A DNA stretch of 64,000 bases. Source: Bigelowiella natans CCMP2755. Lineage: Eukaryota > Protista > Cercozoa. Shown here piece after piece: positions 4,621 through 13,326 of the stretch; within the stretch, counting starts at the first letter, position 1; every line of letters begins with the position of its first letter. A program made the position numbers and the translations under genes. The notes beneath the pieces were generated by a model. It was not told the origin of the DNA and did not search any database. It saw only the letters and a program-made list of their open reading frames with translations. The stretch is from the NCBI GenBank assembly GCA_000320545.1, contig ADNK01001434.1, positions 62,001 to 126,000 of the forward strand. The letters are read 5' to 3'.

Positions 4621-4805
4621 GAAGAATGCGCTTGATACTTGTTTCTTGTTGTCGCAGGACGAAAAAGACTCCTGAAAACGACCTACCCCCGCGAGGGGAA
4701 AGACGCTGTGAACAACAACACGGGAACCCACTTCGGTTGTAGGGAGACGGCTAGATTGGAACACGAGCACTACGGCAAGGAAAGTGGCCCAAGTAGTCTG
4801 GGGGA
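4621..4805. promoter_or_regulatory. Probable compact bidirectional promoter
   Basis: About 185 bp separate the inferred divergent start codons of the TMEM-like and NLR-like genes. Confidence 0.45.
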
Positions 4806-5215
4806 ATGTCCTCACCTTCCAAGAAGGAGATGATGGACTTCATCTTCGGGTACGGCAGCATTATCAATTATAAGAGTCGGAGCTCCACCCTGGGCCGGAA
4901 CAAACCAGGAGGAGGAGGAGGAGGAGGCGGTAGTGGTGGCGCTGTCCTAGCGCGGATTTCTGATAAGGTTAGTTGGACGTAGGGCTGGTAGAAGAGGAAG
5001 GGAGAGGGAGGAGGAGGAGGAGGAGGACGACGACGTGTACTTATTGCCCCTGTTTTCTTGAATGGTAAAGGCTCACGTCACGCACGCGTGTTTTAGTTCT
5101 TAATGTATCGCATATCCTAGTTTCCCTGGATTCGCACGTGGTCGTTTCGGAGCTCCACGGGTTTCACAGCTTTGGGATTAAGGTGATGACACACTCCATG
5201 AAAACGGGCGACAAA

Positions 5216-5253
<38 letters not shown>

Positions 5254-7073
5254 ATTCAACCCACCTCACCACCTCCTATGCTCTTTCTCCAGGAAATGCC
5301 GGCCCTCCGAAACGCCCCTGGGCCTTAACGGCGTGATCTTCCCAGTGGAGGATCTTACTGAATTTGATAAACGGGAGGCAGGGTACTATCGGATCCCTCT
5401 CGATCCCGCGTATCTATGCGACTTTCAGGCCATTCTTCGTGACGTCAAGCAGAAAGACGAAGACACCGATAATGGCAATGGCGACAACGCCAATACCAAT
5501 GGTGGTACCGACCAGAAAACGACCGCATCGGCGATGGGGCCACAGTGGGTGCAGAAGCTGGAGAATCTTGCAGCTGCCCGCCCCCTGGAACCGAGATCTC
5601 CCTCCTCGTGCATGCGCGTGTGGATCTATATTCCAGAAGAATCGAAGCCCGCGACCGGAGAGTTTCCCATCTGCCAAAGCTACGTGGACACGTGCCTCTC
5701 AGGCTGTCTCGAGGAGGGGGGGGAGGCGTTTGCATGCGAGTTCATTCAGAAAACGCGCGACTGGTGCGCATACTATCTAAACGATATTCCGCTCAGTCGG
5801 CGGCCGTGGCTACATCGTGGCAAGCAATATAGGAAAGTCGACGAGATACTCACACGGTACGTATTGTTCATACCCAACAACAACAACAACAACGATGACG
5901 ACGACGACTATAACAATAACAATGACAATAATAATAAGAAGAACAATAAACGCTTTCCATCGCACGCCTACACACATCAGCTCCCCGCATCCCACCAACA
6001 CACATTGTATTGTGCGCTACACCTACTCCCCTCGCCCCCTCTCCTCCTCTCTTCCGCAGGTACAACACAACGACGCATGTCAGCGAGCGCTGCCACCCGG
6101 AGGAGTTTGCCGCTAAGTTTCTAAAGGGAGTGGCTGGGATGTGGGGTGTGCCGCGGCGGAATCATCTTTTCGCAAGTCGCGAGCGCGAGATCGAGGACCT
6201 GGAGAGTTTGTTCGCGGCCGCTGGCAACCACACGCGCGTGCATATCGTGGGGCTGGGAGGGGTCGGCAAAACGCAGCTCGCGATCGAGTATGCACATAGA
6301 CATTACCGCCACCCCTCTCTCACCCGCCATCATCCCCCCGCACCGAGACCACTGCGGGGCAGTGCCGGAGGAAGAGGGGAGGGACAGGATCAAGACAACA
6401 ATGAGAAGGTGCAGCAGCGGAAGGACGGCAAGGGCCGCGTAAGGTCTGTTGTATGTGGTGTGTTTCTGTCTGTCTGTCTGTCTGTGTGTGTGTGTGTGTT
6501 TGTGTGTGTGGTTATTTTTGCAGTTTACCACTTCCTTCATCCTCCCCCTCGCGATCCTCCTCAAATTACTCACACACACTCAAACACGCACACACACACA
6601 ATGAATACTAAAATTAGGGTTAATGCCAGCAGCAGCAGCAGCAGCAGCAGCGAGCCGCACGAAATAGCATTGACGAAGGGGAGCGCAACTCATGGCGGAG
6701 AAAAGCAGCCCACCTTATCACGAAGTCGTTCTTCAAATAGATATCGGCTCATCGTATGGGTATTTCATTTGCAGCAGTAGAGGCAGCAACAACAGTACTA
6801 GTAATAGTAGTAGTTGTACTGCCTGCCACTACAACAACAACATCAACAACAACTACTCTACTACCACTACTACTACTACTTCTGCTATTAAGCGATCCAC
6901 CGTGGTCAGCAATCAGCACGATATTATTCTATCGCCAGGTTCAAGCGGAGACGAGGGAGGCCCTCGTAAATGATCTGTGCTGCGCCGCGATGGACTTCGG
7001 TTTGGACGTCAAAGGCAAAACCAACCTGCAGGTAGGTAGGTAGGTAGTAGCATGTTATTGGTGACGATCGATC

Positions 7074-7109
<36 letters not shown>

Positions 7110-7446
7110 GTGAGGATGATCGATTGTGGTGATTGGAATCAACCACAACAATGTTGGTGATTCTGATCTTGCCATGTTACACAACTGCGTCGTCTCCAAG
7201 AGGACGATGAACATGACCGAAAAATAACGACGATGATGATTAGCTTTTACACTCAACGGTTCGGTGTCATCTCTGTCTTTCCAGGACAGAGAACGTCGCC
7301 GCTTCGTACCATTGTTGAAACTGCATGTATGTTTCTTTCATGCTGCATCTTCTTCTTCTTGTTTCTTCTTCCTCTTCTTCTTCCTCTTCTACTGCTGCTG
7401 CTCTTCCACAACCTAATACGCCCTCTGCAACCCCCTCTTCCTTATT

Positions 7447-7487
<41 letters not shown>

Positions 7488-8013
7488 ACTTGTCCTTGAT
7501 CCATCCAAAGGTGTCGGAGACGTTCAAAGCGAGCCTGTGCCAAAGTCAGTCGGCCTGGCTGCTGATATTCGACAACGCGGAGAGAATGGACGTCATCGAG
7601 GAGTTCACACCCAGGGGAGGGCAGATGGGGCATGTCCTCGTCACTTCGCGTGTACGCCATAACAGGCAGGAGGCAGCGCTCTTGCTCGATTGCTTCTCCA
7701 CGGCTGATGCGCTGTCGTTCCTCCACCGTGCGGCTGGTCCTGCAGCGGGCGTTCTAGAGCCATTCGATAAGGAGGAGAGGGGGATCGGAGGGGGAGAAGG
7801 AGGAGGAGGAGGAGGAGGAGGAGAGAGCGGCAGCGAAGACGCGAAGAAAGAAAGGAATACTGCTGCTACAGCTAGTACAATAGCTACAGCGGCTGTAAGC
7901 TTGACTCCTACTTTCACGTCGTCGGGTGAAAAACTGGTCAAGATGCTGGGCGGACTTCCATTGGCCCTGGCAATGGCGGCAGCATATATGCAGCGTTCAG
8001 ATCTTTCCTGTAA

Positions 8014-8052
<39 letters not shown>

Positions 8053-11000
8053 ACACGGCTGTAATAAGCACTGTACATTGTCTACCGCCACCACCAACAA
8101 TATATTACTAGTTATTACGACGACGGTGAGGGGGAGGATATAACTCGTATGTTACCCTCCCATCTCATAATTACCCTCATCTTTAACCTTCCCCCCCCCC
8201 CCCCTTCCCGCCCTTAGGCAAGGAGTATATCCTCAAATTCCGACGAAGCCGCAACAGGGCGCAGCTGCTGGAGCACAAGATTTCCCAGCTAGCGGACTAC
8301 AGGACAGGGTTAATCGCCAGCCTGTCGCTCAGCATATCGAAGCTAAAGCATGAAAGGAAGGAGGCCAGCGAAGTCCTGCAAGGTGGGAGGCAACGACAAA
8401 TGAACTAAGCAGCTGTTGTTCTTCTATTCTTGCTATAGCTGTGTATTATTATATCTGAGTTATTGCTCGTTTCTGTCCTATTCCCTCTCTCTACCCACCC
8501 TCTTTGCCTTTTCTCCTCCCTCTTAATTTGACCCCCCCCCCCCCCCCCCCCCCCCCTCCACACACCAGATCTGAGTTTAATGGCACCAGAGGGTATAACC
8601 AAGAGCATGGTTCGTGCTCTGCTGGTGCAGCATCGGCGGATGAGGGAGGCAGAGAGAATTCGTCTAAAAAGGGAGAAGAGAAGGAAAGAGGGGATCATGA
8701 TGATGATGATGGCAGAAAAGAAGAAGATAAGTGATGAAGAAGCGAAAAGGCGGAAGGAACATGTAGCCGACAGCACCTCTTCCTCCCCGTTGTCTTCGCT
8801 GTTGTGGAATCGCAACTGGACCCTTGCCGCCGCATGTCTGTGGTGGTGTTGTTTCACAGGCTGCTGCTGGTATATCGTGGTCGTCCGGTGGGGGAGCAGC
8901 AACTCGAGGAGCCTTTTCAGCAATCCATTCCTGCAAGGTGGTGATGATTATGATGATGATTATGATGGGGATTCGTCAACTATCGGCGGGCAGCAGCATG
9001 TCAAAGAAGATGGTATAGTTCTTCCCTCCTACGGGTCATTCTGGTTGCTGTTACTGCTACTGCTCTCGCTATTCCTTGCCCTGATTTCGTCAGTAGCAGC
9101 GTTCGTCCCATTTGTAGCCCCGACCCCATTCGTACTGGTGCCAGCCGCGAGAGGAGGGAGTGCAAAAACATCATCATCATCATCATCATCATCATCTACT
9201 TCATCATCTTCATCACCACCGGTTGCTTCCTCCTCCTCCTCCTCCTCCTCCTCCTCCTCCTCGTCGTCGAGCTTAAAGAAGAAGACAACGGGGAGAGAGG
9301 GGACGAGAGAGAAGAAAATCGACCTCGAAGACGACATCGACGACATCGACGACGACGACGACGAGTTAGAGGAAGGTGATGGTAATGGAGATCATTCTGA
9401 TGATCATACAAAGGAAGGCGCTTGGATTATTGCAGGTGGCAAATGCAGAAATGGGCGACAGAATCACGGTGCTTCCGCCACCACAATCACCACAATCACC
9501 ACCACCACCACCAGCAGCAGCAGCAGCAGCAGCACAACTACCGTCGACACAGATGCACTGTGGGACGCATTGAAGACATACAGCCTTCTTATCGTGCGAC
9601 AGTCACGCTCAGCCTCCATGCACAGGCTGCTGCAGGAGGTCATTCAAGCGGTGTGCTTCCGGTCCTCCTCGCAGCGCCAATCAGCACTTGCGCGATGCGT
9701 GGCGGCGCTCGAGCAGCTTTGGTCGTTCGATCCGGATAATACGAAGACGTGGCAGCCGGCGGCTGGCCTCATCGACCACATCAAAACCGTTGCGAACAAC
9801 GTTATGTTGGAGCTGCAAGGAGGGGGGAGGAAGAAAAAGAAGAAGAAGAAGAAGAAGACGAGGAAAAAGCAGCGGAAGAAGGCGAAGACGCTGGCGCTAC
9901 CAGCGGCGGTGGCGACCTCGTTTCTGGGATCGATTGCACGCATCCTGACCCACGCCGCGGTATTTATGACGATGGCCTTCAACAGATTCGAGGAGGCGCA
10001 CAACGTGCTGAACATTGCCCTACACCTCAGCGAAGCACGCATCAGGATCGTCAGCAGAAGAGCAAGAACAAGAACAAGAAGAGCACGACGAAAAGACAAC
10101 GAGGAGTTAGACCATCATGATGATGATGACGATGATGACGATGATGAACATGGTGACGATGACGATGTCGACTCATCCAAGAAGCAGCAGAGCGACGTGG
10201 TGAGGGCCATGAGGGAGCATGCCGTCACCCTGCGATCGCTGGGGCAGGTGCTGCGCTATAGAGGTTTATATGTAGAAGCAGAGGCTAAGCTTACCGAGGC
10301 ACTGGATATACAGCAGCGGCAGCAGCAGGAAGAGGAGGAGGAGGAGGAGGAGAGCGAGAAGAAGGGGGGGGGGGATCAAAAGAAGGAGCATCGCTGCTAT
10401 AGTAGCAGCAGCAGCAGCAGCAGCAGCAAGTAAGTTATTCGTTGATGTAGCTGTGCATGATGTTGATTTCGTTGTTGGGAAGATGGAGAGGAGGAGGGGG
10501 AAGAAAAAGGAGGAAAGAATAAACAGCAGCAAGAATGGGTCGATGAGAAGGAGGGATAAGGGAGAGAGTTGCTTCTTCACTACTGCTGCATGGTAGTCAT
10601 GGCGTCGATGTGCTATAGATGTGTGATTGCGTCGATACGTGTGTGTGTGTGTGTGTGTCTATTTGAGTAGCAGTAGCAGATTCGAGTGTGCGGTTACATT
10701 GCACGAGCTTGGAGTATTGTCTCTCAAGATGTCGAGGAGGCAGGAGGCTGAGCAACTTCTTGATCAGGTAGTAATAATGCCTGCCGCCATAGGAACAAGC
10801 CCACCCACCTGCCTACGAGAGAAGAGAGGCATGCCGCATCTTTTTCTAATCCCCACCCCCCCGTAACGACGTGTCTTCTTCACCCCCCCCTCAGGCACTC
10901 GCGCTCAAACGAGAACATCTCAAAAACTACGTTGAGGAGGAGGAGGGGGAGGGGAAGGAGGATGAAGATGAAGACGAGGAATCAGACATCGACGATGTGA

Positions 11001-11651
11001 ATGAGGACGAAGGAGAAGATGAAGAAGAAGATGATGAAGAAGAAGAAGAGGCATTACCAAGCGGAAAATCAAATGGAGGCACTCCTAGCTCTGCTAGTAT
11101 TAGCGACGCTGCCGCTCCCCGCCGCAGCAGCCTCCTGCGTTCTGTCGCGGCTACTCTCCACCAGCTTGGCGTCATGGCCATCAACTCGCGGCCTCCCCGC
11201 TACGAGCATGCGGAGCGTCTGCTCAAAGAGGCGCTGATGCTCGAGCGCAAGTGCGGCGGGTACACCTCCAGCGTGCGCACGGCTGCAACGCTGACGCAGC
11301 TAGGAAAGATCGCCCTCAGGAGGTCACGGCTTGCGGGTGCGGAGTGCAGCCTGAAACAAGCGCTCAGCATCCTCACCAAGACGTATAAGTCCGAGATGCA
11401 CGTCAATGTTGCTTCGGTGCGGCATCAGCTGGCAGCTCTGAGCCAGAGGAGAGGGCTCTTCGACGATGCCGCCTACCAGCTGAGGCAAGCGTTGCGTATC
11501 CGGCAGAAAGTCTACGGAACTTCAAGACACCTCGAGGTGGTAGTGGTGGTGGTGGTGGTGGTGGTGGGTGGTAGTAGACAGATAGGTGGCATAGCTACGC
11601 TTTGAGAAGTGTCGCGTCGTCGTCGTCGTCGTACTCGTAGTAATAGAAGAA

Positions 11652-11684
<33 letters not shown>

Positions 11685-13326
11685 ATAGTAGCACGCGATG
11701 GTTTTCATTCCTCGTTGTTGATTGCTTTACTTTGCTCGCAGCCGTAACTGACCAACCAAATACTGAGCGTAGTTTTGCGAATGATTGAGGAGTGCTGCTG
11801 CTGCTGCTGCTGGCTGTATGCTTCTTCGTTGATATTCATATTCCTCACTGCTGCCAGGTGGCGTACACGTTCCACGAGCTAGGGCGCCTAGAGCGAGCGC
11901 GCGGGGATCTCTTGTCCGCTGAGGGCTACTTCCGTGAGCAGGATGCGATCTTATCGCTCCTCATACGACAAGGGGACGATACTGCGGCCGCTGCAGAAGC
12001 GGCAGCAGCGGCAGCAGTGATATCAGAACGTGGGGACACCAAACAGCCTTGGTGCAACGACGTAACCAAACGTGCGAAGATCGGGAACGTTGCGGTGTCG
12101 TGCCTTTATGCCCTCAGGGGCGTGTATAAGGAGATGGGTTCCGAGCGCGATGACGACCTGAAAAGAATCACTACGCGCCTCACGGAGCTCCGACGGGAGG
12201 TCAAGCGCGACACGCAGCACCTGCAGCGACAGCGCCAAAAACGACGGGCGCGACAGCAGAAGGCGAGGACGATGGAGGGCAACCAAGATAGAAAAAATGA
12301 TAATGAAGAGGAGGAAGAAGGTGATGATGATAGTCAGAATGGTGAGGATTGGAGTGGTGGTGAGGAGGGAGGCGGGTTCTACGAGGAGGAGGATGCCGAC
12401 GCCGGAGATATGCAGGTCTGTCATATGTAATGTGTGTGCGTGTGTGCATGTGTGTGCATGTGTGTGCGTGTGTGTGGGGCGTGAGAACAAAGTACACGTA
12501 CACATGAAGGCACACAATTAAGTCGTATGTCAATGCAAACTGGCATGAAAGATGATCTTATCGCCATCATCATCATCGTCGTCATCTTCACACCATCAAA
12601 TAGGTTGCAGCTGTCCCGGTATCCATCAGCATGGCGCTGGCCCTCCGAGAACGACTCCGTCAGATTCTCGTCCAACGCTCTGCAGCAGCAGCGGCATCAC
12701 ACACAGTTGTCACTATTCGCCCGAAAATGAACGCCAACAGCCAGGACGGCGACGATGAGATATTGACTCAGTTGTACCGCAAGATTAACCGCGAGTGTGC
12801 CGAATGCTGTGCTGCCGCAGAAGCCGATCTAAAGATACTAGCTACCAAAGCGATGATGTCGGAGGAGTCGTCGGGGGGTGCAAAGTTCAGGCGGAGAAGG
12901 AGGCGTAGAGGAGCAGCGAGGAGGAAGATCTTGTCGTCACTGATTGAGAATCTCAAAACCATCTCCCAGATCACCCTAAAGCTCTCTTCGAGAGTAGGTG
13001 ATGGGGAAGGAGAAGGTGTGGGGGTGGCATTAGACGATAATGGAAAGAAAGCCAGCGACGGAGAGAACAAGGAGGGCAGCGGCGTTCCCTTAGGTATCAA
13101 TGTGGAGGCAAGTCCTGCTGCTGGTGACCATGCAAATACTACTGGTATGAGCACCAACGCCCATGATGTTAGTAAGCAGCAGAATAAGAACAAGAGCAAG
13201 AGGAACAAGAACAAGAACCAACGCAGCAGCGGCACCAGGGCGGTGTTGTTTACGGCGTGCGACTCCATTAGATCTCTTGCCAGAAAGCTCGGTGTCGTTG
13301 TGAACGACAAGGTGGCGGCAAGCTAA
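4806..13326 (+). CDS. NLR-like STAND protein: N-terminal GGCT/ChaC-like domain + NB-ARC + TPR repeats, with a hydrophobic insertion
   Basis: GGCT-like part: MDFIFGYGSIIN..SR (exon 4806-4967), RTWSFRSSTGFTALG (exon from 5121), NGVIFPV..LTEFDKREAGYYR, PICQSYVD. NB-ARC: VPRRNHLFASRE, P-loop GLGGVGKTQLAIEYAH, Walker B WLLIFDNAE, HVLVTSR, GGLPLAL, MHRLLQEV. TPRs: AVTLRSLGQVLRYRG.Y.EAE, AATLHQLG, VASVRHQLA, VAYTFHELG. Confidence 0.9.

Follow-up and report, generated by a model that had tools for sequence, protein, structure and literature searches.

The window analysed here is a stretch of 64,000 nucleotides from the cercozoan Bigelowiella natans CCMP2755 (contig ADNK01001434.1, positions 62,001 to 126,000 of the forward strand), and coordinates below refer to it unless another sequence is named. 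At 4806-13326, on the plus strand, it carries a 13-exon gene whose product, read exon by exon, has about 1,980 residues. The protein begins with a domain of the gamma-glutamylcyclotransferase (GGCT) fold, continues with a complete series of NB-ARC motifs and ends with tetratricopeptide repeats (TPRs), which is the effector-NOD-sensor order that the original prediction, made from the nucleotide sequence alone, had described for this locus as an NLR-like STAND protein. The start codon is the ATG at 4806, with a TAG 12 nt upstream in the same frame (4794-4796), and the stop codon occupies 13324-13326.

The splice sites were read from the sequence and compared, over 4700-10600, with contigs and reads of public sequencing runs. 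Three of these runs (X1, X3 and X12) represent three studies, and their RNA nature is only guessed. The enzyme domain is separated from the first NB-ARC exon by a 203-nt intron with GT..AG borders (5857-6059), which preserves the reading frame and is absent from contigs of both X1 and X3, the shorter side of the match extending for 255 nt and 142 nt, respectively. This is the outcome that had been proposed for a transcript check across 5855-6060. Three further GT..AG introns (5183-5292, 6760-6938 and 7032-7510) are spliced out in contigs of all three runs. A single X1 contig of 1,846 nt (contig 1) covers 4700-7783 and includes the 5' untranslated region, the enzyme exons, the P-loop exon and the Walker B exon; between its placed pieces lie 130 nt and 232 nt, exactly the lengths predicted for the removal of introns 4968-5120 and 6444-6617. 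Because four introns are spliced and these two lengths fit, this one contig accounts for all six junctions of exons 1-7. The contigs lack the introns, whose ends are canonical, and they therefore originate from spliced mRNA. Other contigs cover 8570-9158, 9275-9481, 9547-9816 and 9874-10107 and are interrupted only at low-complexity repeats, and from a 2026 run (X21) 17 raw RNA reads could be placed, all within 7852-10018 and too sparse for joints. The junctions of exons 10-13 are based on two relatives, P0003 (1,291 aa; a close relative with 42-68% identity) and P0001 (1,304 aa), whose colinearity with the window extends over 4833-13314.

These observations bear directly on whether neighbouring GGCT-like and NB-ARC-TPR genes have been wrongly merged into one gene model. 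It is true that contigs from runs of guessed nature are no proof of full length in every mRNA, but such a merger is effectively refuted by the contigs of two studies that skip intron 5857-6059 and by the one that spans exons 1-7. Moreover, the conserved enzyme domain itself straddles this junction, because the Arg of its ERxHPEEF motif, one of 32 positions that are at least 90% conserved in the family, falls in exon 4, beyond the intron. Relatives also encode both parts in one open reading frame (ORF), among them MMETSP and EukProt transcripts and an intronless relative with an uninterrupted 1,304-aa ORF on a metagenome scaffold (L001, 8001-11915). The claim that the GGCT-like and NB-ARC parts share one transcript is thus borne out. 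The exons are listed in Table 1.

Table 1. Exons of the Bigelowiella natans gene, and the intron between its enzyme domain and its NB-ARC region (window coordinates).
Feature	Position	Strand	Content	Support
Exon 1	4806-4967	+	Start codon, first GGCT-like strand, FGYGS loop 4845-4859	In X1 contig 1; F, G, G and S are invariant family columns
Exon 2	5121-5182	+	FPWIRTWSFRSSTGFTALGL, GGCT-like domain strands	Joint 5183-5292 in X1, X3 and X12; R, W, T, A and G are conserved columns
Exon 3	5293-5856	+	Remaining GGCT core and helical extension; FDKREAGY, PICQSYVD, SRRPW 5795-5809	
Intron	5857-6059	+	203 nt, GT..AG, joins enzyme domain to NB-ARC exon in frame	Skipped in X1 and X3
Exon 4	6060-6443	+	HPEEF linker motif, P-loop GLGGVGKT 6250-6273	AAA_16 E 2.3e-5; 57.6% identity, P0003 residues 227-317
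Exon 5	6618-6759	+	Low-complexity linker, ends YRLIVW (RNBS-A strand)	Joint 6760-6938; start 6618 inferred from 232-nt fit
Exon 6	6939-7031	+	VQAETREALVNDL...GKTNLQ	Both flanking joints in three runs; 81% identity to P0001
Exon 7	7511-8009	+	Walker B, TSR, GLPLAL	54% identity, P0003 residues 380-458
Exon 8	8218-8382	+	Start of winged-helix region	tblastn colinear with P0003 504-557; length fits 378 nt of X1 contig 2 upstream of 8570
Exon 9	8569-10429	+	One open frame: hydrophobic segments, MHRL, first TPR ~10200-10310, low-complexity runs	P0003 680-868 = 9546-10310
Exon 10	10668-10767	+	TPR (AVTLHELGVL...)	TPR_10 E 3.5e-3; P0003 880-907, 57% identity
Exon 11	10895-11536	+	Acidic linker, then best-conserved TPR block 11138-11536	68% identity to P0003
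Exon 12	11858-12415	+	Final TPR-like helices, charged tail	P0003 1072-1162 = 11852-12205; splice sites from sequence
Exon 13	12604-13326	+	C-terminal region, peptide FTACDSIRSLARKLGVVVND 13249-13314, stop	73% identity to P0003 C-terminus, 68% to P0001

The acceptor site of exon 10 is ambiguous, with in-phase AGs at 10667-10679. Two modifications of the gene model were tried and rejected. A candidate mini-exon at 7285-7326 (DRERRRFVPLLKLH), of 42 nt, in phase 0 and with good AG and GTATGT borders, is skipped by all spliced contigs and is missing in relatives; an intron within exon 9 that would excise the hydrophobic insert described below is ruled out for 8570-9158, where the contigs are continuous. 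Parts of the coding sequence consist of poly-Ser, poly-Asp/Glu, poly-Lys and poly-Thr runs (8640-10430, 10920-11060 and 12230-12420), at which the contigs break and which are mostly missing in relatives. The introns are rich in (GT)n, (CT)n, (CA)n and (ATG)n microsatellites (6455-6510, 7060-7110, 7440-7485, 8015-8050, 8190-8210, 8535-8560 and 10640-10660), and C tracts of some 15-25 nt stand directly 5' of their acceptor sites.

The fold of the N-terminal domain was examined in an AlphaFold model of residues 1-257 of P0003, built from an alignment of 65 domains (A1); all structure comparisons use this model, to which the window is linked via conserved residues. The model has a mean pLDDT of 91.7. 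When it was compared with the PDB by Foldseek, the first 16 matches were all of the GGCT fold (human GGCT, yeast and human ChaC, B. subtilis YkqA), with AIG2-like structures after them. The top 13 rows from VIA-align were likewise all GGCT-fold, with Z scores of 11.8 for human GGCT (154/169 residues aligned), 11.1 for YkqA and 9.8 for yeast ChaC, the ChaC proteins ranging over 7.6-9.8. In the ESM Atlas the whole P0003 model, including a helical extension that follows the core, has TM scores of 0.75-0.77 to bacterial gamma-glutamylcyclotransferase clusters (259-274 aa), and a search of the Protein Atlas by features gave scores of 0.82, taken only as a lead and not as evidence. AIG2-like, GGACT, ChaC and GGCT proteins share one beta-barrel/alpha fold.

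At the level of sequence the window follows the same family closely. A phmmer search with the 187 aa of exon 3 against a library of 1.84 billion proteins recovered 757 representatives at E values up to 1e-3, and a profile built from A1 matches exon 3 with an E value of 2.6e-45. When the exons of the window were added to A1 as fragments, they carried the family residue at all 32 of the positions that are at least 90% conserved, including the G and S of the YGS loop and the R-E of FDKREAGY. Together with the P0003 model, this full set of family residues upholds the claim that the domain adopts a GGCT fold. The candidate catalytic Glu is the last residue of FDKRE (5363-5377; Glu codon 5375-5377). 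This Glu and the G and S of the loop are invariant in 65/65 aligned members, as are many residues that line the pocket, and the helical extension, which is the family's own, is conserved too, with invariant Q, Y and D. Since the catalytic-type residues are invariant, the argument from conservation favours a working enzyme, and the N-terminal domain looks catalytically competent.

The placement of the domain among named families is less straightforward. The Pfam families ChaC, GGACT and AIG2_2 were matched neither in the exons (E up to 1) nor in nine relatives, full-length or stand-alone (E up to 0.01), and Pfam assigns NB-ARC and TPR families to P0003 and P0001 and nothing to their first 250 residues. 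The sole matching curated family is NCBIfam NF049903 (FTN_0599_fam_GGCT), with E values of 5e-19 for stand-alone relatives, 2e-9 for the N-terminus of P0001 and 1e-3 for exon 3 of the window; the corresponding scores are 68.7 bits for P0143, which is the best, 37.3 for P0001 and 18.7 for exon 3. The best profile match in the PDB, AIG2-like 2jqv, is weak (E 0.1) and has FGYGS and the Glu of RE..Y in register, and hhalign with E. coli ChaC gives a probability of 86.5% for a partial alignment over the YGS loop (FGYGSL) and the GxxRxF strands. Judged by sequence, the domain is a separate GGCT subfamily with a helical extension and not a canonical ChaC by Pfam. Of the "GGCT/ChaC-like" effector first proposed, the GGCT fold stands.

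The NB-ARC switch that follows carries, in order, every motif that had been reported: after the P-loop come LLIFDNAE (Walker B, 7559-7582), TSR (7643-7651), GLPLAL (7952-7969) and MHRL (9618-9629). In the window the domain is split over six exons, the best of which (exon 4) scores 12.8 bits against a Pfam PF00931 cut-off of 23.5, and exon 7 alone has no Pfam match; in the relatives P0003 (26.8 bits) and P0004 (29.1 bits) NB-ARC exceeds the cut-off, and PF00931 is precomputed for four more. The distance between GLPLAL and MHRL is about 550 residues in the window and about 200-300 in relatives, compared with a GLPLAL-MHD gap of roughly 100 residues in other NB-ARC proteins. The excess is an insert in the winged-helix region, within exon 9, which contains low-complexity runs and two hydrophobic segments (~8811-8888 and ~9037-9141). 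A simple hydropathy scan of the 14 representatives that have P-loop, Walker B, GLPLAL and MHD found at least one hydrophobic segment in the GLPLAL-MHD gap of 11. Such a hydrophobic hairpin would anchor the switch in a membrane and leave the two halves of the protein on the same side of it. Traces of DUF7779 occur in the winged-helix region of relatives.

The presence of C-terminal TPRs is confirmed by exon 11, which scores above the Pfam cut-offs for both TPR_12 (PF13424; 42.4 bits against 30.1) and TPR_10 (PF13374; 41 bits against 27.5). Among the long segments of the protein the TPR block is conserved best, with 68% identity to P0003 as against 38-59% for the other long segments. Conservation returns at the extreme C-terminus, in the peptide FTACDSIRSLARKLGVVVND, whose identity to the last residues of the two relatives is given in Table 1. 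Of the 150 top representatives, 20 have a CD.[LIV]R motif in their final 60 residues, and the peptide is a candidate autoinhibitory or docking tail.

The fusion is not confined to B. natans. Among the best 150 representatives, 61 have a P-loop no more than 200 residues after RRPW, and of the 35 representatives with at least 900 aa, 34 have RE..Y and RRPW; all 34 of these have a P-loop or Walker B motif, 29 of them a P-loop. Named fused members come from the chrysophyte Paraphysomonas imperforata (MMETSP transcript), the synurophyte Mallomonas annulata (EukProt), the choanoflagellate Didymoeca costata (EukProt; P0035, 1,626 aa) and the dinoflagellate Symbiodinium natans (a 716-aa model with the UniRef title 'Gamma-glutamylcyclotransferase AIG2-like domain-containing protein'), the transcripts of Paraphysomonas, Mallomonas and Didymoeca being full-length. 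In a quick, unrooted maximum-likelihood tree, 42 eukaryote-type domains (fused domains, short SRRPW fragments and one GRRPW variant) lie on one branch with an SH-aLRT support of 96, and 20 stand-alone or otherwise fused members lie on a separate branch, a topology that is consistent with a single fusion event. The stand-alone bacterial members are 220-280 aa long; the confirmed loci number more than 510 and belong mainly to Alphaproteobacteria and Burkholderiaceae, and one member, from a Planctomycetota metagenome-assembled genome, is named gamma-glutamylcyclotransferase by NCBI. The architecture search suggested for GGCT plus NB-ARC thus finds the fusion recurring in distant protists and the bacterial relatives standing alone.

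Some relatives differ in what surrounds the shared domain. P0035 has about 340 extra, apparently disordered residues before its GGCT-like domain, and in P0002, P0010, P0011, P0034 and P0105 the domain is preceded by 240-370 residues with no Pfam match. P0005 (725 aa) carries the GGCT-like domain in the middle of the protein, after about 250 unassigned residues, and ends in an SAM-dependent methyltransferase (Methyltransf_31, E 5e-28). On scaffold L001, a kinesin gene (4853-7813, minus strand) lies head to head with the intronless relative.

Because the protein is laid out as enzyme, nucleotide switch and repeat sensor, the simplest reading makes the enzyme the output. The explanation that we favour, tentatively and as not far short of probable, is that of an APAF-1-style switch, in which conserved TPRs sense a conserved signal and the GGCT domain cleaves a gamma-glutamyl compound to produce a stress or death output. 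The TPRs would bind a signal that is endogenous or widely shared, and this binding would release the NB-ARC module for nucleotide exchange and oligomerisation. Oligomerisation would in turn unleash the GGCT domains, or concentrate them at a membrane, and the domains would cleave the gamma-glutamyl compound, most likely glutathione, to 5-oxoproline and Cys-Gly. The thiol buffer might then collapse, locally or throughout the cell, and by analogy with mammalian CHAC1 this collapse would constitute the stress or death output. Glutathione is the best guess for the substrate because the nearest named family is that of FTN_0599 and the first strands are ChaC-like. A bolder version, which we consider rather unlikely, extends this to a whole family of membrane-tethered, APAF-1-like switches, ranging from chlorarachniophytes and stramenopiles to dinoflagellates and choanoflagellates, that would drive regulated death or stress arrest by destroying glutathione, in a manner resembling ferroptosis.

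Several points weigh against the APAF-1-style reading. The fold was predicted for a close relative, P0003, and not for the window's own sequence, and a prediction of the enzyme domain as a two-copy complex scored 0.00, a value that speaks neither for nor against self-association. Two canonical ChaC (PF04752) loci, both split by introns, are present elsewhere in the genome (C3149:36178-36506 and C273:18914-19887), so that glutathione turnover does not need the fusion gene. The best NF049903 score in the family lies well short of the 480-bit cut-off of that model and denotes significant homology, not an equivalog; since the scores are so far below the cut-off and the ChaC, GGACT and AIG2_2 models are unmatched, substrate specificity is not transferable. 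The support for a glutathione link from Francisella is genetic only: FTN_0599, the Francisella "ChaC", is required for growth on glutathione once ggt has been deleted (PMC7340319).

A rather unlikely alternative is that the substrate is a gamma-glutamyl compound other than glutathione, such as gamma-glutamyl amino acids, gamma-glutamylamines, gamma-Glu-epsilon-Lys crosslinks or a specialised metabolite, and that the output is a signal or a metabolic adjustment and not redox collapse. Most GGCT-fold families do not cleave glutathione (PMC7340319), human GGCT, whose substrates are gamma-glutamyl amino acids, is the closest structural match and outscores ChaC, and the invariant Q, Y and D of the helical extension could shape a different pocket. 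Set against this are the tie between the nearest named sequence family and glutathione use in Francisella, and the alignment of the first strands and of the motif around the Glu to E. coli ChaC. It is very improbable that the domain has no catalytic role and that the GGCT fold has been reused as an adaptor or ligand-binding module that signals via partners. Although some NLR N-terminal domains do act as adaptors, the invariance of the YGS loop, the Glu and many pocket residues, all of them kept in the window, is the pattern expected of an active enzyme.

The remaining alternative concerns the sensor, and is the version first proposed for this locus: a classical immune NLR whose TPRs recognise molecules of a pathogen or virus and whose output is abortive cell death by glutathione depletion. 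The effector-NOD-repeat order is typical of NLR-like STANDs, at least 11 other NB-ARC loci are present in the same genome, and depletion of glutathione by the effector RipAY has a place in host-pathogen conflict (cited in PMC7340319). However, the gene is single-copy, being the only one in the 91.4-Mb assembly that matches A1, and it is colinear end to end with its relatives; no other long segment is as well conserved as its TPR block, whereas the repeats of arms-race receptors are usually the most variable part. Among the PADLOC defence models only Avs2 was hit, by the P-loop of P0003 with 16.6 bits, and none by P0001, P0004 or P0143, so that no defence family is matched significantly. We therefore regard an immune receptor of this kind as unlikely. 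Single copy, end-to-end colinearity, the conserved TPR block and the conserved C-terminal peptide are more in keeping with the sensing of a conserved signal than with a polymorphic pathogen receptor, and the conserved hydrophobic hairpin in the winged-helix region also counts against a diversifying one. The NLR-like STAND description accordingly holds for the effector-NOD-sensor layout and is disfavoured in its sense of a classical diversifying receptor.

The known outputs of STAND and NLR proteins include proteases, nucleases, NADases, pore-formers and kinases. With a gamma-glutamylcyclotransferase this list would gain a new chemistry, one that destroys the main thiol buffer or some other gamma-glutamyl compound. 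The fusion is expressed, keeps its candidate catalytic motifs and recurs in four eukaryotic lineages of supergroup level, relatives of animals included, and for these reasons it offers a concrete entry point to the coupling of sensing to redox collapse or glutathione turnover in protists. The fusion is also relevant to the question of whether glutathione depletion of the CHAC1 type, as it occurs when animal cells die, has counterparts that are older and hard-wired. Beyond the fusion itself, a large GGCT subfamily that Pfam misses, with at least 757 representatives at 50% identity and the bacterial loci counted above, comes into view.

In the literature searched, no paper was found that describes a STAND or NLR protein with a cyclotransferase, and papers on the effector domains of fungal NLRs and on the NB-ARC-TPR genes of Ectocarpus do not mention a GGCT effector class; automatic database labels recognise the GGCT-like domain in at least one fused member. 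On the evidence of this literature search, the effector class that this NLR-like switch carries has not been described before, as had been suspected. Its closest enzymatic counterparts are the Francisella FTN_0599 family (NF049903) and the stand-alone bacterial relatives, which have the GGCT core and the helical extension in common with it (positions 62-242 of 266 in the hidden Markov model). Those proteins stand alone, at about 220-280 aa, and the Francisella protein is periplasmic and membrane-anchored (PMC7340319), whereas the B. natans domain forms the N-terminal end of a STAND protein. The fused domains also form a clade of their own, marked by SRRPWLHR and HPEEF. With ChaC1/ChaC2, yeast Gcg1 and E. 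coli ChaC (PF04752) the domain has in common the fold, the FGYGS start and the strands that follow. The ChaC enzymes differ in being small, soluble and transcriptionally controlled, with no fused nucleotide switch, and the exons have no Pfam ChaC match. In mammals, CHAC1 lowers glutathione during the unfolded-protein response as a pro-apoptotic stress output.

On the side of the switch, the protein resembles the NB-ARC-TPR STANDs of fungi, bacteria and brown algae in its NB-ARC motifs, its winged-helix region, its TPR_12 and TPR_10 repeats and its effector-NOD-sensor order. It departs from them in the hydrophobic hairpin of about 100-200 residues that is inserted between GLPLAL and MHD and in having TPRs that are conserved and not shuffled, while as a single-copy, conserved gene it is like APAF-1. 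The TIR and SIR2 NADase effectors that are carried on STAND and NLR scaffolds embody the same concept, an enzyme that is controlled by a switch and destroys a small molecule essential to the cell, but they differ in fold, in chemistry and in presumed target, which is NAD+ in their case and would be a gamma-glutamyl compound here.

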